From: Hydrolagus colliei
Lineage: Eukaryota
Reading direction: 5' to 3'
Assembly: GCA_035084275.1 (NCBI GenBank)
Contig: JAYJKW010000046.1
Coordinates: 1 to 64,000 of the forward strand
DNA length: 64,000 bases
The notes under the pieces are model-generated. The model was not told the DNA's origin. It made no database searches and saw only the letters and a list, made by a program, of their open reading frames with translations. Positions 4,266 to 59,007 of this stretch are shown piece after piece (positions within the stretch are counted from its first letter, which is position 1; the number at the start of each line of letters is the position of its first letter). A program made the translations under genes and the position numbers.

Positions 4266-4929
4266 CACAGTGATACAGTCCCATACAAATACTGGCATCG
4301 GTCTCTGCTCTCTCTACACTGGCTGCCAAAAGTCACTGAAATGGGCTATTTTAATGCCGGACAGAGTCTCAGATGATAATAATAATAATGATAATAATTC
4401 TTCTATTTGATATCGTGACTTTTTCCATCTTCCAGACTGTGTCTCAAAGCGTTTCACAGGAAATACTGCAAAGTGAATTGACTGTGTGTTTGTGGGAGAG
4501 CGAAACGCTGCAGCGTCCCCCACACACAGCTAACTGTGGGTTGAAAATGTCTGTGTGTGTGGGTGGGGGTGGGGGGGGGGGGACGCAATCCAACCTCAGT
4601 CCTGAAGAACCACACAGTCACTTACCGGCTGAAATGGCGGGATATCGCAGCACAGACGCTCGTTCACTCAATCCACTCCTCACTCCCTCCTCACTCCCCT
4701 CCACCGAACCGCCGGTCACTGTCTCGGTTTGGGGAATGAGACGAGGAATCCATTCCAATTGGAAGCCCGTGTTTTCCCTCCGTCCTTCCTTTCTGTGCTG
4801 CAGACACAGTGTTGACACCATGACTTGACTTCCCCCCCAGTCAGTCAGTCAGTCAGTCAGTCGAGGGTGGGACCTCTCTTCGCTTGTGTGAGTATTTGTA
4901 GGAGGCCAGCCCAGGTTCCTCTCACTGTG

Positions 4930-5234
4930 ACTCTCTGGCACAGTAATATATGGCGGTGTCGTGAACTGTCGGACTGTTGATGGTCAGATCGAAGATGTTG
5001 TTGGAAGTGTCTTTTCTGACAGTGACACGGCTTTCAATGCCGGGGGCGTAATACTCGCTGCCTTGAGCTGTGATACCACAGGAGCCATTCCAAGCCTTTC
5101 CCAGGAACCTGCCTGACCAGCTCATCCAGGTGCTGCTGAGAGTGAACCCGCTGGTTTTACAGGTGAGTCTCACGGCCGTGCCAGGCTTCCCGGTTAGAGT
5201 CGCCGCTGTGTCAGCACCACAGCGCCCTGGACGC
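4930..5234 (-). pseudogene. IGHV: Cluster A VH exon, frameshifted as assembled; 23-RSS at 4891-4929
   Basis: [27 protein letters not shown]; three single-base indels versus B V (net -1), all in short homopolymers, so possibly sequencing error. Confidence 0.8.
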
Positions 5235-5414
5235 CTGCGAGAAACGAGAAAAACGGGACCGAGGTGTTAATTACGGCGAGAACCGAGATCCGTGGACGCG
5301 GAGACAGAGACGGAGACAGAAAGATAGAGGGACACACAGAGAGACAGAGAGAGACACACACGCCACAGACGCACGGACGCAAGCGAGACTAGGGTAGGAC
5401 GAACGCCGACTCAC

Positions 5415-5460
5415 ATGAGAAGAGAGCCAGCAAGAGGCTGAGAGATATCAGGGACCTCAT
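5415..5460 (-). CDS. IGHV: Cluster A VH leader exon ([15 protein letters not shown])
   Basis: 46-nt ATG exon with GTGAGT donor, hydrophobic signal peptide, phase matches V exon. Confidence 0.92.
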
Positions 5461-17049: not shown

Positions 17050-17059
17050 ACTCCAGTTA
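17050..17059 (-). other. Cluster B D2 TAACTGGAGT, 12/12 RSS (17022-17087)
   Basis: Both RSS read directly. Confidence 0.92.
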
Positions 17060-17374: not shown

Positions 17375-18001
17375 CACAGTGATACAGTCCCATACAAATA
17401 CTGGCCTCGGTCTCTGCTCTCTCTACACTGGCTGCCAAAAGTCACTGAAATTGGCTATTTTAATGCCGGACAGAGTCTCAGATAATAATAGTGATAATAA
17501 TAATAATAATAATAATAATAATTCTTCTATTTGATATCGTGACTTTTTGCATCTTCCAGACTGTGTCTCAATGCGTTTCACAGGAAATACTGTAAAGTGA
17601 ATTGACTGTGTGTTTGTGGGAGAGCGAAACGCGGCAGCGTCCCCCACACACAGCCAACTGTGGGTTGAAAATGTCTGTGTGTGTGTGGGGGGGGGGGGGA
17701 ACGCTGAAATGGCGGGATATCGCAGCACAGACGCTCCTTCACTCAATCCCCTCCTCACTCCCCTCCTCACTCTCCCCCATCGAACCGCCAGTCACTGTCT
17801 CGGTTTGGGGAATGAGACGAGGAATCCATTCCAATTCGAAGCCCGTGTTTTCCCCCCCGTCCTTCCTTTCTGTGCTGCAGACACAGTGTTGACACCATGA
17901 CTTGACTTCCCCCCAGTCAGTCAGTCAGTCAGTCGAGGGTGGGACCTCTCTTCGCTTGTGTGAGTATTTGTAGGAGGCCAGCCCAGGTTCCTCTCACTGT
18001 G

Positions 18002-29533: not shown

Positions 29534-29916
29534 CACAGTGCCTCAGTGTGTGGTCTGCTCACTGCAATAACTTGCTGTGAGGACAGGTCACACAAACAAT
29601 CTGTTATTCCAAATGGAAAATTCCCCCCAAAACAAAACGCAGGGAACCGTCTCTCTCTGTTGTTAAACGCCTGTGTCTTGCTGTGTTCCCGACAACAAAA
29701 CAGCTCCCATTGCGATTGTCGCCCATGGATTTGAGATTCAAAATACGACGTTTCATGTGTTTTTAAGTCAAATCGGCTGATAATTCCTCAGTGGTGGGTC
29801 TCCTCATACACACGTGAACTCTCCGAGCGTTAGTTGGGACCCTCACAAGCCGGCGGTGGGAGAGATTGAGAAGGTTTTGCTGATGGAGGGTTTTTGTATT
29901 GACAGTTAACGCTGTG

Positions 29917-29930
29917 ACCGTAGTTGTATA
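29917..29930 (-). other. Cluster C germline-fused D1D2 segment TATACAACTACGGT, 12/12 RSS
   Basis: D1-type 5' RSS (heptamer CATAGTG) and D2-type 3' RSS flank one 14-nt core; D1-D2 interval absent. Confidence 0.88.
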
Positions 29931-30511
29931 CATAGTGATACAGTCCCATACAAATACTGGCCTCGGTCTCTGCTCTCTCTACACTGGCTGCCAAAAGTCA
30001 CTGAAATGGGCTATTTTATTGCAGGACAGATTCTCAGATAATAATAATAATAATAATAATTCTTCTATTTGATATCGTGACTTTTCACGTCTTCCAGACT
30101 GTGTCTCAAAGCGTTTCACAGGAAATACTGGGTGGGGGGGGGGGGGGAGGGGTGGGGAACGCAATCCAACCTCAGTCCTGAAGAACCACACAGTCACTTA
30201 CCGGCTGAAATGGCGGGATATCGCAGCACAGGCAGGCAGCTCTTTCACTCACTTCCCTCCTCACTGCCCTCCTCACTTCCCTCCTCACTACCCTCCATCG
30301 AACCGCCGGTCACTGTCTCGGTTTGGGGAATGAGACGAGGAATCCATTCCAATTCGAAGCCCGTGTTTTCCCCCCCGTTCTTCCTATCTGTGCTGCAGAC
30401 ACAGTGTTGACACCATGAATCGACTTCCCCCCAGTCAGTCAGTCGAGGGTGGGACCTCTCTTCGCTTGTGTGATTATTTGTAGGAGGCCAGCCCAGGTTC
30501 CTCTCACTGTG

Positions 30512-34688: not shown

Positions 34689-35161
34689 CTGGAAAATAAA
34701 ATGAAAGATACGATTAATAATTTCAGCCTATGTGTGTGTGTGTGTGTGTGTGTGTCTGTCTGTGTGTGTGTGTCTGTGTGGAGTAAGGAAACTTGCCCAA
34801 AGGTTCGCCCTGACCTGACCTGCCCTGGATTCGAACACAGGTCTCTCACACTTGTAAAGCGAGTGAGTGAACGAGTTCACTCGTTTGTTCGTTCGCGAAT
34901 GAGTGGGTGGGTGGGTGGGTGGGTGAGCGAATTCACTCCTGAGTTCATTCGTGAGTTCGTTCGTTCGTTCATTCGCTCGCTCGTTCGTTCACTTGTTCAT
35001 TCGCTTGTTCGTTCGCGAATGTGTGAGTGAGTGTGTGAGCGAGCGAGCGATGGAGAGAGGGGGGGTAGGGAGGGAGTGTGTGGGAGTGAGTGAGTGAGTG
35101 AGTGAATTCACATGTTTGTTTGTTCATTCGTTCGTGAGTTCGTGAGTTGCCGTCTCCTCAC

Positions 35162-35292
35162 CTTAATCAGAGTGACGGTGGCGCTGTAGAACATACTCAG
35201 GAAGAAGAGGATGATGAAGGTGGAAGCTGTAGGCCAGAGGTGGCCACTTTCATCTGATGAGAAACCCTCCAGCGTCATCTCGGCTGAGGAAT
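35162..35292 (-). CDS. IGHM: Cluster D TM1 exon
   Basis: DSSAEMTLEGFSSDESGHLWPTASTFIILFFLSMFYSATVTLIK. Confidence 0.95.
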
Positions 35293-37528
35293 CTGTGCGG
35301 ATACAACCCGGAGATATATAATAATATTAATATTAATAACAATAATCCTGGCGTTTGATGTCGCCGCTTCTCGTGTCTCACCGGCCGCGTCTGAAAGCGC
35401 TTCCCGGGATAGACTGTCTAGTGTAGTGACTGTGTGTATATCTGTGGGGAGAGCAAAACGCGATCGGCAGCCGATTGCGCACGGCAGCGTCCCCCCCCCC
35501 CCCCCCCCCACACACACACACAGAGCCAACAGTGGGTTGAAAATGACCGATTTGTATCAAAAAGGGATTATTATTAGGTGTGAGTGTGTGTCTGTGTGTG
35601 TGAGTGTGTCTGCGTGTGTGGTGACTGTATGTGTGTGTGTGCGTGTGTGGAGTAAGGAAACTTGTCCCAAGGTCTCCCCCTGACCTGACCTGCTTGGATT
35701 CGAACCCATGTCTCTCTCTCTCTCTCTCTCTCTCACGGCTTGTAAGAGTGAGTGAGTGAGTGTCTCTAACCCGCTGTGCTACAGGACTTTGCTGCCTGTG
35801 GGTTGTGTGGCTGATTTGGGGGGTGGGGGGTGGGGGGGTGGTGAGATGATCAGACACTGTCCCTCACAGTCGAGGTGAAGTTTCGTATCTTAGGGAACAA
35901 TGACGTGGAGTTTATTGTCGAAAATCACTTCAGATTCACTTCAAATAAAACGCTGACTTTACTCTGTGTGTCTAACAGCGATGGAGGGAAAGTGGTATGT
36001 GTGTGTCTGTGTGTGTGAGGGTGTGTGAGCTTGGGTAATTGTGATTGTTAGTGTGTGTGTGAGTGACTTTGTGTTAGTGACCTTGTGTGTGAGTGTATGA
36101 GTGTGCGTGTGTGAGTTTGTGTGGGCTGGGGGATTATGATTGTGTGTGTGGGAGTGACTGTATGCATGTGTGCGTGTGTGTGCGAGCTTGGGTAATTGTG
36201 AATGTTTGTGTGTTAGAGTGTGTGAGTGACTGTGTATTCGAGTGTGTGAGTGACTGTGTGTTAGAGTGAGTGAGTGACTGTGTGAGTGAGTGACTGTGTG
36301 TGTGAGTGACTGAGTGAATGACTGTGAGTAAGTGAGTGAATGTGTGAGTGAGTGAGTGTACGAGTGTGTGTGTGTGCTGGGTGATTAGGATTGCGTGTAT
36401 AGGGGACTGGGTTATTGTGAGTAGGTGTGAGTGTGTGAGTGTGTGTGAGTGTGAAATGGTTGATAGTGTGTGTGGGTGTGTGTAGGCTTTCATAATCGCG
36501 AGTCTGTGTGTGTGTGATCCTAGCTGTGTGTGTGTGAATGTGTGTAAATCTGGATGGATAGGAGAGTATGTGTGTATTGGCCTGTGTGTGTGTGTATTAT
36601 TGTATGTGGCCCTGGTAGATGAGATTGCCTGTGAGCGTATATGTGATTGTGTGAGTGAGTGAGAGTCTGTGCGTGTGTGTGATTGTGTGTGCCTCGCTGG
36701 TCATGGGTCCACAGCAGTGTGTGTGACTGTGTGTAAGTTGAGACGGATGCGAGTGTGTGTGAGCCTGTGTGTGTGTGAGTGTATTATTGTGGGTGTGAGC
36801 CTGGGTGGGGATGTGAGTGTGTGTGAGAGTACAGGTGAGTGTGTGAATGAGTGTGATTCTCTGTGAGTGTGTGCACGCGCGTGCGTGTGTGTGTGACCCT
36901 AGCTGGGCATGCGTAAACAGTAGTGTGTGTGAATGTGTGTCAATCTGGATGGATCGGAGTGTGTTTGGGTGAACGCGTGTTTGTGTGTGTGTGTGTGTGC
37001 GCGAGTATGCGTCTGTGTGTGTGTGTCTGTGGGTGATTGTGAATCGGTGTGTTTATTTGACTATGTCCGAGTGTGGCTGAGTGTGTGTGTAAAGCTGTTT
37101 GCGTGTGGTGGGTGGGAGGGGTGGGGTGTGGGGGGGGGGAAGCTGCTGTTTCGCTCTCCCACAAATATATGTACAGTCACTACACTTTACGATATATCCT
37201 GTGAAGCGCTTTGAGACACAGTCTTGAAGACGTGAAAAGCCGCGATATCAAACGCCGGGATTATTATTATTATAATTATTACTAATTGAATGAAACATTC
37301 CCCTCTGGGACCTTGACTCAAATCTTACAATAAAAAGATGTTTTATTGGAGTTACCGGTACTTTCTTTCCATGACTTCAAATTGGTCAAGTTTAGGGAGG
37401 GGGGGAGGTGGGAAGAGAGGGAGGGGAGAGGGGAGGGGAGGGGAGGAGGTTAGGGTAAGGGTAAGGGGTAGTAGGAGAGAGTTGCCGACAAAAGGAGCAG
37501 CCAACGGATGAAGCCAATGGGAAACATG

Positions 37529-37914
37529 TCATTGGCAGCCATTGACGTTGTCCATCAGGACGAGAGAGGGATTTACGAAACAGGGTTTACCGCTGAACTT
37601 GTTGATTGATCTGGTCTTGGGCTGGTCCATGGATTCGTGTCTGACCACACAGGAGTACGTGCTCCCCTGCTCCCACTCGGAGCTCGAGATGGACAACAGA
37701 CTGTACATGGAGTGTTTGAGTCCGGTCTCGGTTCCCATGACCTCCGTGTTGGAGTAGTCGCACTCGCTCATGGCCTGGCCGTTGACCGTCCACTCCACCA
37801 GGATCTCCTTGGGGGCGAAGTCCTTCACCAGGCACGTGAGGTTGACCGATTGGTGAGAGTAGAGCTCCTCGGCCAACAGGAGGAGGAGATACACTGAAGG
37901 CTGCTCTGGGGAGA
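37529..37914 (-). CDS. IGHM: Cluster D CH4 plus secretory tail (type 2)
   Basis: VSPEQPSVY..LTCLVKDFAP..YSCVVRH..SGKPCFVNPSLVLMDNVNGCQ*. Confidence 0.93.
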
Positions 37915-38470
37915 CTGTGGGGAGAGTCGACACTCGAATCAACGGCGGCGACAAAACGGACGACGCTCGTAGAGACACTTTCACCTCAGGAGGACCTCCC
38001 ATGGCGAGGGACAGTCACTGTGTCAGATCCGAGTGATGGTAAGACGGGACATGGGGTGGGGTGAGGGTGAGGGGAGGGGAGGGGAGGGGAGGGGAGAAAT
38101 CTCTCCCCTCCCCTCCCCTCACCCTCCCAATCGGGAGTTGCCGATGGGTGCATCGAAGAGGAGAGTCTTGAGGTGGGACTCGAAGGGAAGCCAGTGAGGG
38201 AGGGAGGGGACGAGTGAGCGAGGTGGAGGGAATGTGGGTTGTGGGGAGGGAGGGAGGGAGGGAGGGTGGGAAGGAAGTGAGTGAGGGAGTGAGGGGGCGA
38301 GTGATCGAGGTGGAGGGAATGTGGGATGTAGGTAGGGAGGGAAGGAAGGGAGGGAGCTTGTGAGCGTGCGAGGGAGGGAGCGGGAGCAGGTTGGGATAAG
38401 GAGTTCCAGTTGCCAATAAGTCAAAGAAACCATTCCTTGGTCCCGAAAACCCCTGGCGTCCTTTGCTCAC

Positions 38471-38782
38471 CTTCGCTCTTGGATATCTCTGCGCGCTTGG
38501 GAGAGGCCATGGTTGGGTGGCTGGCCTGGCAGGCGTATCTCTTCCTACTAGCCCAGTCTTGGGCGGGAATATCCAACTCGCTGACCGCTCGCCGAGCCGA
38601 GCGATTCTCGTGCGTCGACTGTATGGCCGTCTGTCCTCGAGTCCAACTCACGGTGACGTCGCTGGGGGCGTTGGTCACGACGCAGGTCAGGGTGACGGTG
38701 GCCTGCGTCAGTAGCTGCCTCGCTGAGGGCGGCAGCAGAGACACGCAGACTTCTGGCACGGCAGGCGGACAATCGGGAGATC
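38471..38782 (-). CDS. IGHM: Cluster D CH3 (type 2); acceptor at 38782 or in-frame alternative at 38752
   Basis: (GSPDCPPAVP)EVCVSLLPPS..VTLTCVV..YACQASH..ISKSE; GTGAGC donor. Confidence 0.88.
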
Positions 38783-39270
38783 CTGCGGTTCGAATCCGGG
38801 CAGATCAGGTCAGGGTCCAGGGCAGGGCAGGGCAGGGGGAGACCCTGGGAAAGTTTCGGTACTCTTCACCCTCAACACACACACACGTACGCACACACAC
38901 GCAACACACACGTAGCACACACAACACACAATGTGAGTGTGTGTGTGGGGGGGGGGGCTGGGTGATTCTAATTGTGCGTATGTGTGTGGGGGACTGGGNN
39001 NNNNNNNNNNNNNNNNNNNNNNNNNNNNNNNNNNNNNNNNNNNNNNNNNNNNNNNNNNNNNNNNNNNNNNNNNNNNNNNNNNNNNNNNNNNNNNNNNNNN
39101 NNNNNNNNNNNNNNNNNNNNNNNNNNNNNNNNNNNNNNNNNNNNNNNNNNNNNNNNNNNNNNNNNNNNNNTGTGAGTGTGTGTGGGGACAGGATTATTGT
39201 GAGTGTGTGTGTGTCTGCGAGAGAGATCGAGTGCTCTGTACCACTGAGCTACAGGAGACCCCAACCCTAC

Positions 39271-39570
39271 CTGGGCTCCAATTGGTGATGTTTATGATGA
39301 TGAGGGTCTGGGAGGGGTCATGGGTGACTTTGCAGGCATAAATCACGTCTTTCGTCCAGTCTGTGGCCGGGATGGTCAGTCGGCTGTCAGTACTGAAGTT
39401 CCCATTGTCATTGAGCGAAGCGGAGGTCTCAATGCCTGAGGCCAAGGCCTTCCCGTCCTTCAGCCAGTCAACCCTGAGCTTGTCTGGACTGAAGCCAGAG
39501 ACTGAGCAGAGAAGCGTGGCCTGGTTGGCGAAGGCGATGTCTTTGGGGGACGTCTGTGTGAGGGGCACAA
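39271..39570 (-). CDS. IGHM: Cluster D CH2 (usual acceptor missing; next in-frame AG assumed)
   Basis: VVPLTQTSPKDIAFANQATLLCSV..YACKVTH..NWSP; 5' boundary inferred. Confidence 0.82.
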
Positions 39571-40075
39571 CTGGGGGCGACGGCGACAACAACAAGGACA
39601 AAATTAGACACGCACAGACAGGGGCTTTCGCGTCAGGAGGACGTCCCAAGGCGCTGGACAGTCACTGCTTCAGAACCAAGCTGAGGACAATGTGATGGGG
39701 TGGGGGAGGAGAGGGGGTGTGGGGTGTGGTGTGGGGGGGAGTCAGGTGGAGGGAGTGGGGGGTGGGGGAGATTAGGATTTGCGGAAGGGCCCATCGAAGA
39801 GGAGGGTCTTGAGGCGAGACTTGAAGGAGTCCAGTGAGGGAGAGAGGGAGGGAGCGAGGCGTAGGGACTGAGGGATGGAGTTCCCGAGTTTGCGGGGAGG
39901 TAGGCGGACGGATAGAGTGGCTGAAGCCTGGCCCATTAGGCTCACCGTCATACGAGCGTAAGCATTAGGAGCAGAAGTAGGCCATTCAGCCCCTCGAGCC
40001 TCGCGTGAAAGGCTCTACGCAGGGGGTAATGTTGTTGTCTGATTGCCTCTGTACCTTTGGAAACACAAAACTAAC

Positions 40076-40384
40076 CTGGGAAAGTGACATTCTCGCCTGA
40101 CCAGCTGCTGCTTTTGACCTGACAACAGAGATTGGAGATGTCCACCTGAGATGCCTGGATGGTCAGCTGGCTGCTGGCTGTGTAGAGACCGGCCTTGCTG
40201 AGCACCGAGGGGTAAATCTTGATTTGGCCTTCGTTGGCGATGGGACGTCCATTGGAGGTCCAGCTGAAAGTGGCCGGCTCGGGGGCGTAGTCGGCGGCCA
40301 GACACCCGAACGTGAGTCGGCCTGCGGGGGTGGGCGATTCGCAGGTGGGCCGGAGGGTGTAAAAACTGGGAGCTCTAGGGGTGT
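40076..40384 (-). CDS. IGHM: Cluster D CH1 (type 2)
   Basis: DTPRAPSFYTLRPTC..GCLAADYAP..LCCQVKSSSWSGENVTFP; 309 nt. Confidence 0.93.
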
Positions 40385-40499
40385 CTGGAAACGCGAAGAG
40401 AGCAAAGTTAGACCCCACCCACCAGGTTTCCGCCCTTCTCCAATTGGGTAAGACGCCACAGATACACTGGACTAGACCTGCCGCACGCGTCATTACACC

Positions 40500-40895
40500 C
40501 ACAGGAGTAGGCCATTCAGCCCCTCGAGCCCGCCCCTCCCATTCAATAAGATCACGGCTGATCTTCTAATCTAACTCCCCCGACCCCCCGCCTTGTCCCC
40601 ATCTCCCCTTAATCCCTTTATCCTCAAGAAATCTCATCAATCTCAGTCTTGAATATGTCCAGGAACTGACTGAGCATCTACAGCCCTTTGGGGTAGAGAA
40701 TTCCATCCATTCACTATCCTCTTGAGCGAAGATGTTTTTCCTAAAATCAGTGTGAAAATGCTGACCCCTCATCTTCAGACTGTGACTCTCTAGTTATGGT
40801 TTCTCCAACCAGGGGACACAGTCTCCCACTGTCCACTGTGTCAATGCCCCTTAATAATCTGATACATTTCCATAAGATCACCTCTGATTCTTCCA
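40500..40895 (-). mobile_element. CR1 LINE 3' fragment (D)
   Basis: Orthologous intron copy. Confidence 0.72.
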
Positions 40896-41569
40896 ATCAG
40901 GTCTCACACTCAATCACAGCCTGAACCCTGACATCTCAATCGCAAACTGTTTCCGTCCAATAAACCACGGGTTACTAAACACTCTCCTTCTGTCGGCCAG
41001 ACGCTCTCTCTCCCTCTCTCTCCCTGTGTCCGTTTCTCTCGCTCTCGGTGGCTGGCCAGCCAGCTCACACTCTGTCCTTCCACGTCACAACACGGAGCCT
41101 TCAATCTGCGTTTCGCCCACAAACGTACAGTCACTACACTTGACAGTCTATTCTGTGAAGCGCTTTGAGACACAGTCGATCGGATGTGAAAAGCCGCCAC
41201 GTCTAACTCAAGGATTGTTCTCATTACTAACACCTGGATCTCTTGTACAGAGTTTACGCTGTGTGACGTAAACTCTGTACATAACTCAAACATTAAATAA
41301 TAATCATTGCATTTGATATCGCGCTTTTCACATTTTATCAACGTCTCAAAAGCTGTGCACAGAATACACTGAATTGACAATATATTTTGTGCGAGAGACG
41401 AACGCGGCAGCCAATTGCGCACAGCAGCTTCCCCACAAATAGCCGTGGATTGAAAATAACCAATTTTATTCCAGTGGGAATTTGTTTTTGGACGGATTAT
41501 TATTGAGCGAGTGAGTGAGCGCGTTCTTTCGCTCATTCTTTCGTTCGTTCATTCGCAAATGTTTCTTAC

Positions 41570-41624
41570 CGTCAGTCACTGTCAGCCTGGTCCCTTGTCC
41601 CAGAAGTTAAGAACTCCAGTTGTG
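41570..41624 (-). pseudogene. IGHJ: Cluster D germline-joined D(D)J with D1-type 12-RSS (41625-41652)
   Basis: CAC-AACTGGAGT(D2)-TCTTAACTTCTGGGACAAGGG..GACG|GTAAG; in-frame TAA as assembled; open (TTGVLNFWGQGTRLTVTD) if one G is restored. Confidence 0.85.
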
Positions 41625-42298
41625 CACAGTGATACAGTCCCATACAAATACTGGCCTCGGTCTCTGCTCTCTCTACACTGGCTGCCAAAAGTCACTGAAA
41701 TGGGCTATTTTAATGCCGGACAGAGTCTCAGATAATAATAATAACAACAATAATAATTATTCTATTTGATATCGTGACTTTTCGCGTCTTCCTGACTGTC
41801 TCAACGCGTTTCACAGGAAATACTGTAAAGTGAATTGACTGTGTGTTTGTGGGAGAGCGAAACGCGGCATCGTCCCACACACAGCCAACTGTGGGTTGAA
41901 AATGTCTGTGTGGGTGGGGGGTGGGGGTGGGGGGGGGGGTGGAACGCAATCCAACCTCAGTCCTGAGGAACCACACAGTCACTTACCGGCTGAAATGGCG
42001 GGATATCGCAGCACAGACTCGTTCACTCACTCCCCTCCTCACTCCCCTCCTCAGTCCCCTCCTCACTCCCCTCCATCGAACCGCCGGTCACTGTCTTAGT
42101 TTGGGGAATGAGACGAGGAATCCATTCCAATTCGAAGCCCGTGTTTCCCCCCGTCCTTCCTTTCTGTGCTGCAGACACAGTGTTGACACCATGACTTGAC
42201 TTCCCCCCAGTCAGTCAGTCAGTCAGTCAGTCGAGGGTGGGACCTCTCTTCGCTTGTGTGAGTATTTGTAGGAGGCCAGCCAGGTTCCTCTCACTGTG

Positions 42299-42606
42299 CT
42301 AGGCGCTGGCACAGTAATATATGGCGGTGCCGTGAACTGTCGGACTGTTGATGATCAGATCGAAGATGTTGTTGGAAGTGTCTTTGATGACAGTGACACG
42401 GCTTTCAATGCCGGGCGCGTAAGAATTGAAGGATGAGCTGTAATAATACAGGAGCCATTCCAAGCCTTTCCCAGGAACCTGCCTGACCCAGTGCATGTAA
42501 TAGCTGCTGAGATCAAACCCGCTGGTTGTACAGGTGAGTCTCACGGCCGTGCCAGGCTTCCCGGTTAGAGTCGCCGGCTGTGTCAGCATCACAGCGCCCT
42601 GGACGC
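42299..42606 (-). CDS. IGHV: Cluster D VH exon ending CASA* at the RSS; RSS at 42261-42298 with 22-nt spacer
   Basis: Open frame to terminal TAG; conserved DTA changed to GTA. Confidence 0.88.
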
Positions 42607-42795
42607 CTGCGAGAAACGAGAAAAACGGGACCCGAGGTTAATTGCGGCGAGAACCGAGATCCGTGGACGCCGAGACAGAGAGAGAGACAGAGGCAGAGAC
42701 AGAGAGAATCAAAGAGGCAGAGACAGAGAGAGACACACGGACGCACGGACGCAAGCGAAAACAGCGAGACTAGGGTAGGACGAACGCCGACTCAC

Positions 42796-42841
42796 ATGAG
42801 AAGAGAGCCAGCAAGAGGCTGAGAGATATCAGGGACCTCAT
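42796..42841 (-). CDS. IGHV: Cluster D leader exon
   Basis: 46 nt, ATG to GTGAGT. Confidence 0.92.
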
Positions 42842-45800
42842 GGCTTCCCAGACAAAGTATCAGAGTTTGACGCGCCCTGTTTGTTTGAGCCACAACAGCC
42901 GAGAGACAGAGAGCTGTCGGGTGGACAGATGGGGTCTGTTACACACTGAGCTGCTATTTAACGAGGGGGGACGAGGCCAGGTGTCTGGGGAACGGACCAA
43001 TGAGGTATCAGGGCTGATTGGGGAGGAAGGGAGGGGAGGGGGTGAAGGAGGTGGGGGGGCGGGGGGAGAGTCACACCTCACATTCCCTCTGACCCCCGCA
43101 CTGATAATTAATTTACCTTCTGCCTGGATGGCAGCAAAGTTCGTATTAATTAATACGAGTGTCAATAGTGGGAGCTTTCTGTGGCTCGGTGGTTGGAGCA
43201 ATCGCTCACTCACTCACCCTCTCTCTCTCTCTCTCGCTCGCTCGCCTTGCAAACATGAGATATCTGTGTGTGTTCAAATCCAGGCAGATCAGGTCACGTC
43301 AGGGCGAAAGCTTGGGCAAGTTTCCTTACTCCACGCACACAAACACACAAACAGACACAGAGACACACGCGCACACACACACACACGCCTAATAATAATG
43401 CCTCCAAACACCACACCCACTATAACAAAAATAAAATAATATAAATTGGTCATTTTCAAACCACTGTTGGCTGTGTGTGTGGGGAGGGAGGGAGGGGGGG
43501 TGGGGACGCTGCTGTGTGCAATTGGCTCCCAGATCGTGTTTCGCTCTCCCCACAAAACATATATACAATCACTACACTTGACAGTCTATTCTCTGAAGTG
43601 CTTTGAGACGTGGATAAGAGGTGATGAGCCGCGATATCAAACGCGAGGATTATTATTATTATTATTACATACACTCAAACATACATACACTGTACACACA
43701 AAAACACATACACACAAACACACACACACACACACAGCCGCGTGTGTCCGCCTCACAAAGCCACTCTGGCTTTGATGGAACGTGGAGCGAAATTATCGTT
43801 TCATTTTCTGTTCGAATCGACATCACTGATGGTTCTCCCTCCGGAAGGCGTTTTGTGACCTGAACAAGGTATTTACTGGCTGAACGTGAGGACGCACAGT
43901 CTGGCGGTCGGTCGCTCGGCGACGTTTCTATTTCGGTGAAGAAACGAGACGTTTGACGCGTTTCGAACGACGCCAAATAACGGAACGATATAAATATGAC
44001 AACAGCGTTTCATCCGTTCGAGGATTTCTGGGAATTTCTAGAAATAAGATATTTTCTTCCACGTCTGCGCCTTCGAACGATAATTATAATCCTGGCGTTT
44101 GGATATCGCGGCTTCTCACGTCTTATCGACCGTGTCTCGACGCGCTTCACAGGATAGACCGTCGAGTGTAGTGACTGTGGGTCCCCACACATACAGTGTC
44201 TGGGGACCCAAATCTGATGATGTGAGAAGGGCTCAGTTCCTTATCCACAGGAAACACCTGCTCTCTCTGCCACTGAATTAGAGTCTCTGCCTCTTAATAC
44301 TGACCTGACCTGAAAGCCGACCACTGGAGACTGGTTAAAAATACTCCAACAAACAGCTCAAGCTTTCAACACACACACACTCTCACACACACTCACACTA
44401 GCACACACACACACACACTCACACGCATTCACATTCACTCACACACACACTCACTCGCACACACAAATACGCACACACACNNNNNNNNNNNNNNNNNNNN
44501 NNNNNNNNNNNNNNNNNNNNNNNNNNNNNNNNNNNNNNNNNNNNNNNNNNNNNNNNNNNNNNNNNNNNNNNNNNNNNNNNNNNNNNNNNNNNNNNNNNNN
44601 NNNNNNNNNNNNNNNNNNNNNNNNNNNNNNNNNNNNNNNNNNNNNNNNNNNNNNNNNNNNNNNNNNGGGGGGGGTCAATCCCAGCTGCGTCCTGTGACAA
44701 GCCGTGCCCGCCGCTCGAACCCCCTGCTCCCCGCCAGCCACCCCCTGATGGTCTCCCGTCCACTCGCGAGTCTCTCGAATCGGTGACGAGGCCCAGAGAG
44801 AAACAATAATCCCCCGAATAATATAGAAATCTAATAATCGCATTAATGTTAATAATCACCGATCCGGCATTGGATACGGCGGCGTTTTGTTTTCGCGTCT
44901 CGTCGACCGGGTCTCGAAGCGCTTCGCGGGATAGACCGTCAAGCGCAGTGACTGTGTGTACATGGATATATTTGTGGGAGAGAGGAACGCGGCAGCCGAT
45001 TCCGCACGACAGCGTCACCCCCACGCACCCCCCCCCCCACACACACACACTCATAGATTGAAATGACAGATTTTTTATTATTGTGTGTGTGTGAGTATGT
45101 GTATATCGTGTGTGCGTATTTGTGTTGTGTGTGGAGTNNNNNNNNNNNNNNNNNNNNNNNNNNNNNNNNNNNNNNNNNNNNNNNNNNNNNNNNNNNNNNN
45201 NNNNNNNNNNNNNNNNNNNNNNNNNNNNNNNNNNNNNNNNNNNNNNNNNNNNNNNNNNNNNNNNNNNNNNNTGTGTGTCTGTTTGAGTGTGTGTGTGAGT
45301 ACGTGTATGAGTGTGTGTGTTGAGTATGTGTGTGCGTATTTGTGCGTGAGTGAGCGTGTGACTGAGTGCGTGTGTGTGTGTGCGAGTGAGTGCGTGTGTG
45401 TGTGTCTGTGTGAGTGAATGTGAATACGTGTGAGTGTGTGTGTGTGTATGTGAGTGTGTGTGTGAGTGTGTGTGTGTGTTGAAAGCTTGAGCTGTTTGTT
45501 GGAGTATTTTTAATCAGTCTCCAGTGGTCGGCTTTCAGGTCAGGTCAGTATTAAGAGGCAGAGACTCTAATTCAGTGGCAGAGAGAGCAGGTGTTTCTTG
45601 TGGATAAGGAACTGAGCCCTTCTCACATCATCAGATTTGGGTCCCCAGACACATACACACAGTCACTACACTCGACGGTCTATCCTGTGAAGCGCTTCGA
45701 GACACGGTCGATAAGACGGGAGAAGCCGCGATATCCAAACGCCAGGATTATTATTCTTTATTATGATTATGTCTCTACCGTTTAAAACTCGCGAAACAAT

Positions 45801-46879
45801 TAACTTAAATTAGTTAAATTTAATTAAATCTGCTTAATTTCGCTTCACGTTCCTTTAAAGCCGGAGATGTTTTGTGAAGCGGACACACGCGGCTGTGTGT
45901 GTGTGTGTGTGTGTGTGAGTGTGTCTGTGTGTATGTGTTTATTTGTGTGTACAGTGTATGTATGTTTGAGTGTATGTTTGTAATAATAATAACAATAATA
46001 ATCCTCGCGTTTGATATCGCGGCTCATCACCTCTTATCCGCGTCTCAAAGCGCTTCACAGAATAGACTGTCAAGTGTAGTGACTGTATATATGTTTTGTG
46101 CGGAGAGCGAAACGCGATCGGCAGCCGATTGTACACAGCAGCCCCCCCCCCCACCCCCCCCCCCCCACACACACAGCCAACAGTCGGTTGAATATGACCA
46201 ATTTTTATTATTTTATTTCTATTATAGTGGGTTTGTTTTTGGAGGCATTATTATTAGGCGTGTGTTTGTCTGTCTGTCTGTGTGTGTGTCTCTGTGTACG
46301 TGTGTGTGTGGCTCTGTGTGCGTGTGTGTCTGTGTGTGTCTATCAGTGTGTGTGGCTGTGTGCGTGGAGTAAGGAAACTTGCCCATGGTTTCGCCCTGAC
46401 CTGACTTGATCTGCCTGGATTTCAAACACACAGATCTCTCATGCTTGCAAGGCGAGCGAGAGAGAGAGTGAATGCTCTAACCACCGAGCCACAGAAAGCT
46501 CCCACTATTGACACTCATATTTATTAATATGAACTTTGCTGCCGTCCAGGCAGAAGGTAAATTAATGATCAGTGCCGGGGTCAGAGGGAATGTGAGGTGT
46601 GACTCTCACCCCCCCCCCCCTCCCTCCCTGTCCCCCCTCCCACCTCCTTCACCCCCCCCCCCTCCCTCCCTGTCCCCCCTCCCTGCCTCCGCCCCCCCCT
46701 CCCCAATCAGCCCTGATACCTCATTGGTCCGTTCCCCAGACACCTGGCCTCGTCCCCCTCGTTAAGTAGCAGCTCAGTGTGTAACAGACCCCATCTGTCC
46801 ACCCGACAGCTCTCTGTCTCTCGGCTGTTGTGGCTCAAACAAACAGGGCGTCAAACTCTGATACTTTGTCTGGGAAGCC

Positions 46880-46925
46880 ATGAGGTCCCTGATATCTCTC
46901 AGCCTCTTGCTGGCTCTCTTCTCAT
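46880..46925 (+). CDS. IGHV: Cluster E leader exon ([15 protein letters not shown])
   Basis: 46 nt, GTGAGT donor. Confidence 0.93.
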
Positions 46926-47101: not shown

Positions 47102-47433
47102 GCGTCCAGGGCGCTTGGATGCTGACACAGCCGGCGACTCTAACCGGGAAGCCTGGCACGGCCGTGAGACTCACCTGTAAAACCAGCGGTTTCGATCTCA
47201 GCGGCTGGTACATAGACTGGGTCAGGCAGGTTCCTGGGAAAGGCTTGGAATGGCTCCTGCGTTATCACACTCCAACCGCTAGCAACACTGCTTATGCACC
47301 CGGCATTCAAAGCCGTGTCACTGTCATCAAAGAGAATTCCAACAACATCTGCGATCTGATCATCAACAGTCCGACAGTTCACGACACCGCCATATATTAC
47401 TGTATCAGAGGATATACAGTGGACCACTACGGT
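47102..47433 (+). CDS. IGHV: Cluster E germline-joined V-D1-D2 exon, in frame; D2-type 12-RSS at 47434-47461
   Basis: ..DTAIYYCIRGYTVDHYG then CACAGTG-12-ACAAAAACC; no V 23-RSS. Confidence 0.93.
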
Positions 47434-47873
47434 CACAGTGTTAACTGTCAATACAAAAACCCTCCAACAGAAAAACCTTCTCAATCTCTCCCACCGCCGG
47501 CTTGTGAGGGTCCCAATTAACGCTCGGAGAGTTGACGTGTGTATGAGGAGACCCACCACTGAGGAATTTTCAGCCGATTTGACTTAAAAACACATAAAAC
47601 GTCGAATTTTGAATCTCAAATACATGGGCGACAATCGCAATGGGGGCTGTTTTGTTGTCGGGAACACAGCAAGACACAGGCGTTTAACACCAGGCGAACG
47701 CAGATTGTTCTGTGCGGTTGTTGTTGTTGTTGTTGTTGGGAACATGACAGAGAGAGACGGTTTCCTGCGTTTTGTTTTGGGGGAAATTTACCATTTGGAA
47801 TAACAGATTGTTTGTGTGACCTGTCCTCACAGCAAGTTATTGTAGTGAGCAGACCACTGACTGAGGCACTGTG

Positions 47874-47922
47874 ACATATCTTCACAACTGGGCACAAGGG
47901 ACCATGCTGACAGTGACTGACG
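47874..47922 (+). CDS. IGHJ: Cluster E JH (TYLHNWAQGTMLTVTD), 23-RSS at 47835-47873
   Basis: AGTTATTGT-23-CACTGTG; GTAAG donor; WAQG instead of WGQG. Confidence 0.92.
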
Positions 47923-49739
47923 GTAAGAAACAATTGCGAACGAGCGAAAGAAAGAACGCGCTCACTCACTCACTTAATAATAATCCGTCCAAGAAAAAAA
48001 AATTCCCACTGAAATAAAATTGGTTATTTTCAATCCACGGCTATTTGTGGGGAAGCTGCTGTGCGCAATTGGCTGCAGCGTTCGTCTCTCCCACAAAGTA
48101 TATTGTCAATTCAGTGCATTCTGTGCAGAGCTTTTGAGACGTTGATAAACTGTGAAAAGCGCGAAGTCAAATGCAATGATTATTATTTAATGTTTGATAT
48201 TTAATGTTTACTGTTTAAAGTTTAGAGTTTAAATTTGACAGTTCAGCAGGTAGCATGTAGAAAGTAACATTTAAAATTAAAAATGTAAATTTTAAATTTA
48301 AAAATGGAAAATTTTAGACTTTAAATTTAAAAATGGAAAATGATTAATTTAAAATTTAAAAATTTTAATTTAATGTCACCTGTTACATTTAACATTTATA
48401 TGAATTATTTCATTATAATTATATTATTAGTATTATTGCTGGTATATTTTCGGTGGTTAGTGACTCCACAGCTGAAGTCACACTGACAGACTTCCTGCGA
48501 TGTCTGATCATGGTGATGCCGGCTGCTGATTGTGGGGGTACGATGGGGTCGGGAATTGTATAAATACGTTTGAAACTTTTGCCGCGTGTTGGGAATCAGG
48601 GGCTGAATGTTGTGGGATGAGCGAGTGGCAGCCTGTCTGATCGGTTCCAATCTGAATTTCAATTGGTTGTTTATTAGGAAGGAAAGAGGCTCGTCCGGGA
48701 TAGAGGGGAGGAGACTGGGGTGGTGGGGGGGAGACTGAGAGTAAAGTGGGTTTACACTGCTGGGATGTCATTGAAAATACAGTCACTAAAACTGCTCGGA
48801 TATTACAATAATATAATAATTTTCACATCTTATCGACTGTGTCTCAAAGCGCTTCACAGAATAGACTGTCAAGTGTAGTGACTGAATATTTGTGGGAGAG
48901 CGAAACACCGCAGCCAATTGCGCACACGCAGCCGTGGATCGTAAATCACAATTTTTATTATTGTGATTTCTTTTGGAGGGATGACTATTGGTGTCTGTGT
49001 GTGTGTGTGTGTGTGTCTGTCTGTCTGTTTTTGTGTGTGTGTGTGACTGTGTGTATGTGTATGTATGTGTGTCTGTGTGTGTGTTTAGCAAGCAAATTTG
49101 GCCCCAGGTCTCGCCCTGACCTGATCTGCCTGGATTCGAATACAGGTCTCACACTTGCGAAGCGAGTGAGTGCCTCTAACCATTGAGCTTCAGGAGCTCA
49201 GATTTTCATTTCAATTTGATTTTCACGGCAATTGAGTGAGGCTTCCTCACAGCGCACAGTAGACACGATAGGCCGTTGCTGCTCTACAATCATCCGGTTC
49301 CTGTTTCACACCAACTGACCAGCGGAGAAAACACACACAGATCTGATTGCAATCGAACACACAGCGTAAACTCTGTATAAGAGATGCAGGTGTTCGTAAT
49401 GAGAACAATCCTTGCGTTAGACGTGGCGATTTTCACATCCGATCGACTGTGTCTCAAAGCGCTTCACAGAATAGACTTTCAAGTGTAGTGACTGTACGTT
49501 TGTGGGCGAAACCCAGATTGAAGGCTCCGTGTTGTGACGTGGAAGGACAGAGGGTGAGCTGGCTGGCCAGTCACCGAGAGCGAGAGAAAGGGACACAGAG
49601 AGAGAGAGAGAGAGAGAGAGGGAAATAGAGCGTCCGGCTGAGACAAGGAGAGTGTCGAGTAACCTGTGGTTTATTGGACGGAAACAGTTTGCGTTTGAGA
49701 TGTCAGGGTTCAGGCTGTGATTGAGTGTGAGACCTGATT

Positions 49740-56253: not shown

Positions 56254-56562
56254 CCACCCCGAGAGCTCTCAGTCTTTACGCCCTCTGGCGCACCTGCGGA
56301 TCGCCCCCCCTCGAAGGCCGACTCACGTTCGGGTGTCTGGCCATTGACTACTCCCCCGAGCCGGCCACTTTCAGCTGGACCTCCAATGGATGTCCCATCG
56401 CCAACGAAGGCCAAGTCAAGAGTTACCGCTCGGTGCTCAGCAAGGCCGTTCTCTACACAGCCAGCAGCCAGCTGACCATCCAGGCATCTCAGGTGGACAT
56501 CTCCAATCTCTGTTGTCAGGTCAAAAGCAGCAGCTGGTCATTCGAGGACATCTGTGTCCCAG
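56254..56562 (+). pseudogene. IGHM: Cluster F CH1 (open, but no upstream V/D/J)
   Basis: 309 nt, ATPRALSLY..GCLAIDYSP..LCCQV. Confidence 0.85.
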
Positions 56563-57023
56563 GTTAGTTTTGTGTTTCCAAAGGTAAAAAGACGATCAGA
56601 CAACAACAACGACAACATTACCCCTGTGTAGAGCCTTTCACGCGAGGCTCGAGGGGCTGAATTGCCTATTGCTGCTCCTAATGCTTATGCTCTTATGACG
56701 GTGAGCCTAATGGGCCAGCCTTCAGCCACTCTAACCGTCCGCCCACCTCCCCCCAATCTCTGGAACTCCATCCCTCAGTACCTCCGCCTCGCTCTCTCCC
56801 TCTCTCCCTCCCTTCCTGGCTTCCTTCAAGTCTCGCCTCAAGACCCTGCACTTCGATGCGCCCATCGGCAAATCCTAATCTTCCCCCCCCCCACCCCATC
56901 ACATTGTCCTCATCTTGGTTCTGAAGCAGTGACTGTGCAGCGCCTTGGGATGTCCTCCTGACGCGAAAGCCCCTGTCTGTGCGTGTCTAATTTTGTCCTT
57001 GTTGTTGTCGCCATCGCCCCCAG

Positions 57024-57322
57024 TTGTGCTCCTCACACAGACGTCCCCCGAAGTCATCGCCTTCGCCAAGCAGGCCACCCTTCTCTGCTCAGTACTGGCT
57101 TCAGTCCAGACAAGCTCAGGGTTGACTGGCTGAAGGACGGGAAGGCCTTGGCATCAGGCTTCAAGAGCTCCCCTTCGCTCAATGACAATGGGACCTTCAG
57201 TACTGACAGCCGGCTGACCATCCCGGCCACAGACTGGAAGAAAGACGTGGTTTATTCCTGCAAAGTCACACATGACCCCTCCCAGACCCTCATCATCAAG
57301 AACATCACCAATTGGCGCCCAG
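57024..57322 (+). pseudogene. IGHM: Cluster F CH2, 1-nt frameshift
   Basis: AGTACTGGC versus AGTCTCTGGC; 299 nt. Confidence 0.82.
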
Positions 57323-57774
57323 GTAGGGTTGGGGTCTCCTGTAGCTCAGTGGTACGGAGCACTCGCTCTCTCTNNNNNNNNNNNNNNNNNNNNNNNNNNN
57401 NNNNNNNNNNNNNNNNNNNNNNNNNNNNNNNNNNNNNNNNNNNNNNNNNNNNNNNNNNNNNNNNNNNNNNNNNNNNNNNNNNNNNNNNNNNNNNNNNNNN
57501 NNNNNNNNNNNNNNNNNNNNNNNNNNNNNNNNNNNNNNNNNNNNAATAACCCAGTCCCCCCCACACACACGCACAATTAGAATCACCCAGCCCCCCCCCC
57601 CCACACACTCACACTGTGTGTGTTGTGTGTGCTACTTGTGTTTTGCGTGTGTGTGCGTACGTGTGTGTGTGTGTGCGTACGTGTGTGTGTGTTGGGGGGG
57701 AGAGTACGGAAACTTGCCCAGGGTGTCCGCCCTGCCCTGGAACCTGACTTGATTTGCCCGGATTCGAACCGCAG

Positions 57775-58086
57775 GATCTCCCGATTGCCCGCCTGCCGTG
57801 CCAGAAGTCGGCGTGTCTCTGCTGCCGCCCTCACCGAGGTAGCTGCTGACGCAGGCCACCATCACCCTGACCTGCGTCGTGACGAACGCCCCCAGCGACG
57901 TCGCCGTGAGTTGGACTCGAGGACAGACGGCCTTACAGTCGACGCACGAGAGTCGCTCGGCTCGGCGAGCGGTCAGCGAGTTGGAGATTCACGCCCAAGA
58001 CTGGACCAGTAGGAAGAGATACGCCTGCCAGGCCAGCCACCCAACCATGGCCTCTCCCAAGCGCGCAAAGATATCCAAGAGCGAAG
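57775..58086 (+). pseudogene. IGHM: Cluster F CH3, donor mutated GT to CT
   Basis: AGCGAAG|CTGAGC versus |GTGAGC in D and E. Confidence 0.85.
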
Positions 58087-58624
58087 CTGAGCAAAGGACG
58101 CCACGGGTTTTCGGGACCAACGAATAGTTTATTTGGCTTATTGGCAACTGGAACTCCTTATCCCAACCTGCTCTCGCTCCCTCCCTCCCTCGCACGCTCA
58201 CACGCTCCCTCGCTCCCTTCCCTCCCTCCGTCCCTTCCCTCCCTCCCTACATCCCACATTCCCTCCACCTCGCTCGCTCGCTCAATCGTCCCCTCCCTCC
58301 CTCACTCACTCCCTTCCCTCCCTCCCTCCATCCATCCCTCCCCACCTACCACATTCCCTCCACCTCGCTCACTCGCCTCCTCCCTCCCTCCCTGGCCTCC
58401 CTTCGAATCCCACCTCAAGACTCTCCTCTTCGATGCACCCATCGGCAACTCCCAATCTCCCTCCTTCCCTCCCCTCCCCCTCATCCGAACCCCGTCTTAC
58501 CCTCACTCGGGTCTGACACAGTGACTGTCCATCGCCATGGGACGTCCTCCTGACTTGAAAGTGTCTCTACGAGCTTCGTCCGTTTTGTCGCCGCCGTTGA
58601 TTCGAGTGTCGACTCTCCCCACAG

Positions 58625-59007
58625 TCTCCCCAGAACAGCCTTCAGTGTATCTCCTCCTGTTGGTCGAGGAGCTCTCCTCTCACCAATCGGTCAACCTCAC
58701 GTGCCTGGTGAAGGATTTCGCCCCCGAGTAGATCCTGGTGGAGTGGACGGTCAACGGCCAGGCCATGAGCGAGGGCAACTACTCCAACACGGAGGTCATG
58801 GGAACCGAGACTGGACTCAAACACTCCATGTACAGTCTGTTGTCCATCTCGAGCTCCGAGTGGGAGCAGGGGAGCACCTACTCCTGTGTGGTCAGACACG
58901 AATCCATGGACCAGAACAAGACCAGATCAATCAACAAGTCCAGCGGTAAACCCTGTTTCCTAAACCCCTCTCTCGTCCGGATGGACAACGTCAATGGCTG
59001 CCAATGA
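58625..59007 (+). pseudogene. IGHM: Cluster F CH4 plus tail, premature TAG at 58729-58731
   Basis: FAPE* then EWTVNG..MDNVNGCQ*; one codon shorter than D and E. Confidence 0.88.

Follow-up and report, generated by a model that had tools for sequence, protein, structure and literature searches.

Cluster D of the spotted ratfish (Hydrolagus colliei) IgM heavy-chain genes has its D1, D2, and J segments fused into a single exon in the assembled genome, with V still split from them. This arrangement is very likely a germline join of the RAG type and most likely sits in a pseudogene. As assembled, the cluster D copy is unable to make a canonical heavy chain.

The window analyzed here, i.e., the whole 64-kb stretch of spotted ratfish IgM heavy-chain DNA, holds five tandem V-bearing clusters (A to E) and a set of C exons without V (set F). 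The cluster map combines an RSS scan, a five-way MAFFT alignment of clusters A to E, and a tblastn exon map. The minus strand carries clusters A, B, C, and D, whose V RSSs are at 4929, 18001, 30511, and 42298, respectively; cluster E and set F (56.2 to 59.0 kb; 56259 to 59004) lie on the plus strand. The locus is of the cluster type found in cartilaginous fish. A full cluster consists of leader, V, D1 (12-RSS/22-RSS), D2 (12-RSS/12-RSS), J (23-RSS), and C, with the C part made up of four C1-set exons with an IgM secretory tail, followed by TM exons. Pfam called four C1-set domains and one V-set domain, in agreement with a V-D1-D2-J-Cmu cluster. The best database match for the C region of cluster D was a B-type cDNA, "immunoglobulin heavy chain [Hydrolagus colliei]" (64% identity). 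This ratfish cDNA, P0001, differs hardly at all from cluster B in the leader, V, J (WGQGTMLTVTD), and the four C domains, which identifies the DNA as spotted ratfish IgM and B as an expressed type of cluster.

The five clusters occur in four joining states: V-D-D-J (A and B), V-DD-J (C), V-DDJ (D), and VDD-J (E). Clusters D and E stand head to head, with leader ATGs on opposite strands and approximately 4 kb apart (42841 to 46880). This arrangement marks an inversion point in the array, and two N runs lie in between. The window also contains 37 copies (with up to three mismatches) of a SINE-like core, CCTGTGAARCGCTTTGAGAC, whereas chance would give 0.01; each cluster has about seven copies, and examples are at 41152 to 41171, 41798 to 41817, and 37198 to 37217.

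Anatomy of the fused D1-D2-J exon

The fused element of cluster D runs from 41652 to 41570 on the minus strand, in the order D1-type RSS, CAC, D2 core, J, and splice donor. The initial annotation had placed here a D1-type RSS on CAC plus AACTGGAGT, fused to a J lacking its RSS, and all of these parts are present, exact to the base. The retained D1-type 5′ RSS (41625 to 41652, minus strand) has a 12-bp spacer and reads CACAGTG-ATACAGTCCCAT-ACAAATACT on the plus strand, in RSS orientation; along the minus strand, it consists of the nonamer AGTATTTGT, the spacer ATGGGACTGTAT, and the heptamer CACTGTG. This 28-mer is identical at 28 of 28 positions to the D1 5′ RSSs of cluster A (4266 to 4293) and cluster B (17375 to 17402) and has one mismatch with that of cluster C (chance expectation, 0.00).

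The D1 coding position (41622 to 41624, minus strand) holds CAC, where clusters A and B have TATACAGTGGGT. With only CAC, or CACA, left of it, D1 coding sequence is indeed almost erased, as had been annotated. The D2 core AACTGGAGT follows (41613 to 41621, minus strand) and equals the cluster B D2 without its first T; as first proposed, it matches the cluster B core, and its only other occurrence in the window is that D2 (17050 to 17058). The 9-mer is not significant in itself, as at least two matches were found in 28 of 100 shuffles, and it owes its weight to its placement between the D1 RSS and J. The J part, TCTTAACTTCTGGGACAAGGGACCAGGCTGACAGTGACTGACG (41570 to 41612, minus strand), has no J RSS and is about 4 nt short at its 5′ end relative to the other Js. 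It is followed by the GT of the splice donor (41569 to 41568, minus strand). Past the heptamer, the coding order is thus CAC AACTGGAGT TCTTAACTTCTGGGACAAGGGACCAGGCTGACAGTGACTGACG and then gtaag.

Aligned with the other clusters, cluster D is without D1 coding sequence and the D1 3′ RSS, the spacer DNA on either side of D2 (D1-D2 and D2-J), both D2 RSSs, and the J RSS. Approximately 750 bp of the unjoined clusters is gone, and the edges of the loss fall exactly at heptamer/coding borders. The flanks, in contrast to this gap, are co-linear with those of the other clusters at ∼90 to 95% identity, both in the J-C intron downstream and in the unrearranged V-D1 spacer DNA upstream (41653 to 42260, minus strand), which is co-linear with A, B, and C and includes the SINE-like core at 41798 to 41817. 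Trimming amounts to about 4 nt of J and about 1 nt of D2; there are no added bases at the D2-J junction and CAC alone at the D1-D2 junction. The loss of DNA between heptamer borders, apparently light trimming, and an outer RSS left intact together form the signature of V(D)J recombination, and we infer RAG to be the maker of the join. The joined pairs also obey the 12/23 rule: in A and B, where the segments are unjoined, spacer lengths are 22 bp (D1 3′), 12 bp (D2 5′), 12 bp (D2 3′), and 23 bp (J). Joining of D1 (22) to D2 (12) and of D2 (12) to J (23) is legal and direct joining of D1 to J is not, which accounts for the retention of D2. What remains is a D1-D2-J coding join with the outer D1 5′ 12-RSS alone, and the annotated view of a pre-joined element that needs only one V cut is upheld.

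The fusion could have come about without a recombinase, through an ordinary deletion or through gene conversion by another, already joined copy in the array. Exchange of sequence among the clusters is evident from their mosaic structure, and the CAC, together with a GTG|CAC palindrome, is unexplained by simple trimming. The 5′ end of D1 is uncut in a D1-D2 join, so that TATACA... would be expected beside the heptamer. The palindrome (GTGCAC) is formed by the heptamer end and the first coding bases (41619 to 41631) and may represent P nucleotides, an atypical joint, or chance. The CAC itself may consist of N/P nucleotides, i.e., complete trimming with added bases, or may be a remnant that mutated later. 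Two separate deletions, each bounded by heptamers and leaving D2 in place, would be very unlikely if random, and conversion merely shifts the question to the donor. We therefore regard an origin without the recombinase as highly improbable.

We infer the germ-line timing of the join from the assembly consensus. V-DDJ intermediates are documented in nurse shark thymocytes and B cells (PMC2435157), and the assembler might conceivably have caught such a somatic intermediate from lymphocytes of the sequenced tissue, with the germline really unjoined. Polyclonal lymphocyte rearrangements, however, do not win an assembly consensus, and three clusters within the 64 kb carry different joins. The J of cluster D has diverged through substitutions and a deletion, which points to age rather than a fresh event, and germline-joined clusters are normal in cartilaginous fishes (PMC5192425). 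A somatic origin is accordingly very doubtful.

For a germline origin through RAG, we propose that V(D)J-type recombination would have joined D1 to D2 in the germ line of an ancestor (22/23-RSS with 12-RSS) and that D2 would have been joined to J in the same ancestral germ line (12-RSS with 23-RSS). Both signal pairs and ∼750 bp would have been removed and the coding ends trimmed, leaving a single D1D2J exon that kept only the outer D1 5′ 12-RSS. A single join of V (22/23) to DDJ (12) in a lymphocyte would then complete the gene, with CDR3 diversity limited to one junction. A 1-bp deletion in the J Trp-Gly codons would account for the TAA in the splice frame.

Reading frame and decay of cluster D

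The defect in the fused exon lies in a G run at 41599 to 41601 (minus strand), where cluster D has TGGGAC, one base fewer than the TGGGG of A, B, and C; E has TGGGC at this site. As in the initial annotation, a TAA stop (41607 to 41609, minus strand) is in frame when the exon is spliced to CH1, the splice frame reading HNWSS*LLGQGTRLTVTD. Stops occur before the donor in all three frames, because the three-base G run shifts the frame of WGQG (the Trp-Gly codons), and cluster D consequently lacks the open J with WGXG of a functional cluster. Rescue of the frame by trimming would require the loss of ∼16 nt, and the J Trp would be lost even so. With one G added, the remaining J substitutions are mild (Asp to Asn, Tyr to Phe, and Met to Arg). 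The J of cluster D differs from each of the other Js by several substitutions in addition to the deletion. An extra C in the J of cluster A was considered as a lesion and ruled out, as the splice frame there still reads WGQGTMLTVTD.

Sequencing errors most commonly take the form of a one-base change in the length of such a run, and the quality of the surrounding sequence thus bears on the result. The exons of clusters B to E (6.4 kb) contain 268 homopolymer runs of at least three bases, and none of these runs has a frame-breaking indel. Between clusters B and C, which are 3.6% divergent, only five 1-bp indels occur in 4.8 kb, and most of these are not in long runs. An assembly miscall at the G run is therefore unlikely, and the 1-bp deletion in J appears to be real rather than an assembly error. 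Exact look-ups in public assemblies of the CH4 open reading frame and of the antisense open reading frame spanning the join, sought as an independent copy of the G run, found neither on record.

Upstream of the join, cluster D is well preserved. The leader exon (42796 to 42841, minus strand) was mapped by tblastn and has its ATG at 42841; it encodes 15 residues and the first base of a Cys codon, and its end was derived from the cluster alignment and cDNA P0001. A conserved CCAAT/ATTGG pair and a TAAATA box precede the leader, and the cluster D promoter is close to the consensus in the promoter alignment. The exact octamer ATGCAAAT does not occur in the window, and promoter integrity was therefore judged by conservation of the CCAAT/TAAATA region. 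The V exon (42299 to 42606, minus strand; tblastn) is open, matches the Pfam V-set domain (E = 3e-15), and retains Cys23, Trp41, and Cys104. It ends in ...YYCASA followed by a TAG directly at the heptamer, where the stop can be trimmed. The V 3′ RSS (42261 to 42298, minus strand) consists of CACAGTG, a 22-bp spacer, and ACAAATACT. The spacer is 23 bp in the other clusters, with cluster D one G short in a GGG run; we ruled this out as a lesion, because a 22-bp spacer is also found in cluster B, which is of an expressed type, at the D1 3′ RSS.

The constant region is likewise open, with CH1 (40076 to 40384; acceptor and donor present), CH2 (39271 to 39570; in-frame ccccag acceptor), CH3 (38471 to 38752), and CH4 with the secretory tail and stop (37529 to 37914), all on the minus strand. 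Transmembrane exon 1 follows at 35140 to 35290 (minus strand; approximate bounds) and ends in ...LWPTASTFIILFFLSMFYSATVTLIKV. All splice sites of cluster D are usable, both RSS heptamers are perfect, and CH1 to CH4 and TM are open, such that the promoter, RSSs, splice sites, and C exons are intact apart from changes at a CH1 Cys and a tail site.

These changes are among several signs of relaxed constraint. The FR3 of the cluster D V has HGTA, versus HDTA in the other clusters; of 14 VH sequences aligned, ranging from chimaera to mammal, 13 have the Asp, and only cluster D has Gly. The C-terminal Cys of CH1 is replaced in cluster D (NVTFP versus D/A-ICxP) and kept by B, C, E, and F. In CH4 and the tail, LLLPS has become LLLLL and the N-glycosylation site NLS/NVS has become NPS, both changes being common to cluster D and the pseudogene F. 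CH2 of B, C, and E has an alternative acceptor upstream, and both D and F have lost it by deletion. Because of such further signs, the most plausible view of cluster D is that of a pseudogene joined in the germline, which would preserve a trace of past RAG activity in germ cells.

The initial annotation had offered two readings of the element, a dead join and a functional pre-joined DJ with a homopolymer miscall. The evidence favors a dead join with good confidence, given the absence of indels in the 268 runs and the marks of decay, and disfavors the miscalled functional gene. If the true sequence were GGGG and the assembly had dropped one G, cluster D would be a working gene with its DDJ already joined in the germline, and the CDR3 tail of its heavy chains, ...TTGVLNFWGQGTRLTVTD, would hardly vary. 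The defect is, after all, a single 1-bp homopolymer change; the promoter, leader, V frame, RSSs, splice sites, four C exons, and TM exon are intact; and the changes in J are conservative in the +1G frame. One error in ∼270 runs would also be compatible with the clean homopolymer count. Nevertheless, no other frame-breaking homopolymer indel occurs in the 6.4 kb of B to E exons, and the few B/C indels fall mostly outside long runs. Cluster D, moreover, lacks the near-invariant FR3 Asp and the CH1 Cys and has the derived tail and CH4 changes in common with the dead set F. No D-type chain was found among public proteins, which counts only weakly, as ratfish is almost absent there. Taken together, a functional gene with a dropped G is unlikely.

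The protein searches behind this last point recovered neither a D-type C region nor a D-type V among public proteins, where ratfish is represented by a single cDNA; the V query of public proteins returned no ratfish entries, and ratfish genomic open reading frames are absent from that collection. Transcripts of cluster D, if it were used, would carry the D-type CH1 spliced to ...FWGQGTRLTVTD, with V joined to ...NFWGQGTRLTVTD-CH1. It is quite improbable that cluster D is a working single-cut gene in which the lack of one G reflects a polymorphism or an assembly error. Were it so, the inherited D1D2J exon would fix most of CDR3 and only the V-DDJ junction would vary. Cluster D would then represent a semi-innate antibody class, complementary to the known fully joined VDJ gene of ratfish, and the 64-kb array would be a graded series of pre-joined states, all in use.

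Neighboring clusters and the history of the array

Cluster C has a germline D1-D2 join (29888 to 29958, minus strand) that reads TATACA|ACTACGGT. The heptamer of its 5′ RSS is CATAGTG, in which the essential CAC is lost, and V-to-DD joining in this cluster is consequently probably crippled. Cluster E (47104 to 47940, plus strand) is a germline VD1D2 join that is open in frame (...YYCIRGYTVDHYG) and is followed by a 12-RSS at 47434 to 47461; its J reads NWAQGTMLTVTD, with Ala replacing the first Gly of WGXG. Either the breakpoints or the D2 types differ between the joins of C (DD) and E (VDD) and that of D, and several independent join events are therefore recorded within 64 kb. A common origin of the DD joins of C and D was judged less likely, despite the ...ACA|ACT... 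found in both, as the D2 types differ (ACTACGGT versus ACTGGAGT).

Cluster A (568 to 840 and 4937 to 5460, minus strand) is an unjoined pseudogene with two 1-bp deletions in the V exon and a frameshifted CH1. In set F, CH2 has a 1-bp deletion, the CH3 donor reads CT instead of GT, and CH4 contains a TAG. No V match was found by tblastn upstream of set F, but a V could be hidden in the N runs that immediately precede the set. Clusters A and F each carry several lesions, substitutions included, which shows that real pseudogenes exist in the array.

Along its length (35000 to 43300), cluster D is a mosaic: from the promoter through CH1, it is 90 to 95% like all clusters, and from CH2 onward, it is 94 to 96% like E and F, with CH3 and CH4 only 74 to 76% like those of B and C. 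These identities imply two C subtypes and one common type of V-J region. Cluster D has 11 derived sites in common with F and 3 in common with E. Lineage-specific changes on the C exons number S9/N34 in D, S10/N32 in E, and S6/N27 in F, against a neutral ratio of ∼3.3, and dN/dS is close to 1 in cluster D and also in E. We rejected C-exon dN/dS as a test of dead versus live copies, as D, E, and F are all near neutral. The values in D and E point to a decaying D/E/F subfamily, with D not singled out.

Relation to known joined genes

Germline-joined IgH clusters are a known class, which includes the VD-J and VDJ genes of horned shark, VD-DJ and VDD forms, the nurse shark IgM1gj, and a ratfish IgM V. 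RAG activity in germ cells has been held responsible for genomic joins in sharks (PMC2193156), and reviews describe the germline forms VD-J, VD-DJ, and VDJ (PMC5192425 and PMC4279169). Ratfish is already known to have a VDJ gene that is fully joined, as well as an IgM lacking CH1 (PMC3149040 and PMC12227049), and PMC12227049 cites a germline-joined ratfish IgM V. Cluster D resembles this class in belonging to a cluster-type locus, in a genomic fusion exactly at RSS borders, and in the coexistence of joined and split clusters. It differs in that V is still split and the whole of D1-D2-J is fused. Furthermore, cluster D is apparently dead, whereas the nurse shark IgM1gj is expressed in neonates. 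The V-DDJ form is absent from the lists of germline forms in PMC5192425 and PMC4279169; the germline DDJ thus adds a configuration unnamed in these two reviews to a class that is itself well known.

The same configuration, with two rearrangements done and V-to-D pending, is known as a somatic V-DDJ intermediate in nurse shark (Malecek et al. 2008, PMC2435157) and is evidence there that the segments of a cluster can be joined in variable order. The nurse shark intermediate is somatic, from thymocytes and B cells, while cluster D is in the assembled genome, among fixed partial joins, and has acquired substitutions since. The mammalian DJH intermediate is also similar in that D is joined to J first, and the 12-RSS 5′ of D is left for a single V-to-DJ step; it is, however, somatic and transient and contains one D, whereas the join of cluster D is inherited and contains two. 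Chicken VD-fused pseudo-VH genes and catfish germline VDJ genes with defective C exons are discussed in PMC2193156. These joined pseudogenes are, like cluster D in its most likely reading, recombinase products fixed in the germ line that encode no chain alone. The chicken pseudogenes serve as gene-conversion donors, a role that nothing suggests for cluster D.

As the copy is probably dead, cluster D is useful as an annotated example and an evolutionary marker; no new mechanism is involved. Activity of the V(D)J recombinase in germ cells, and the remodeling of antigen-receptor loci that it brought about in the course of evolution, is documented in genomes chiefly by antibody genes joined in the germline. 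This holocephalan window sets an unjoined cluster beside three different partial joins (DD, DDJ, and VDD), which indicates that repeated, unordered germline events lie behind the partial joins, mirroring the unordered somatic joining seen in nurse shark.
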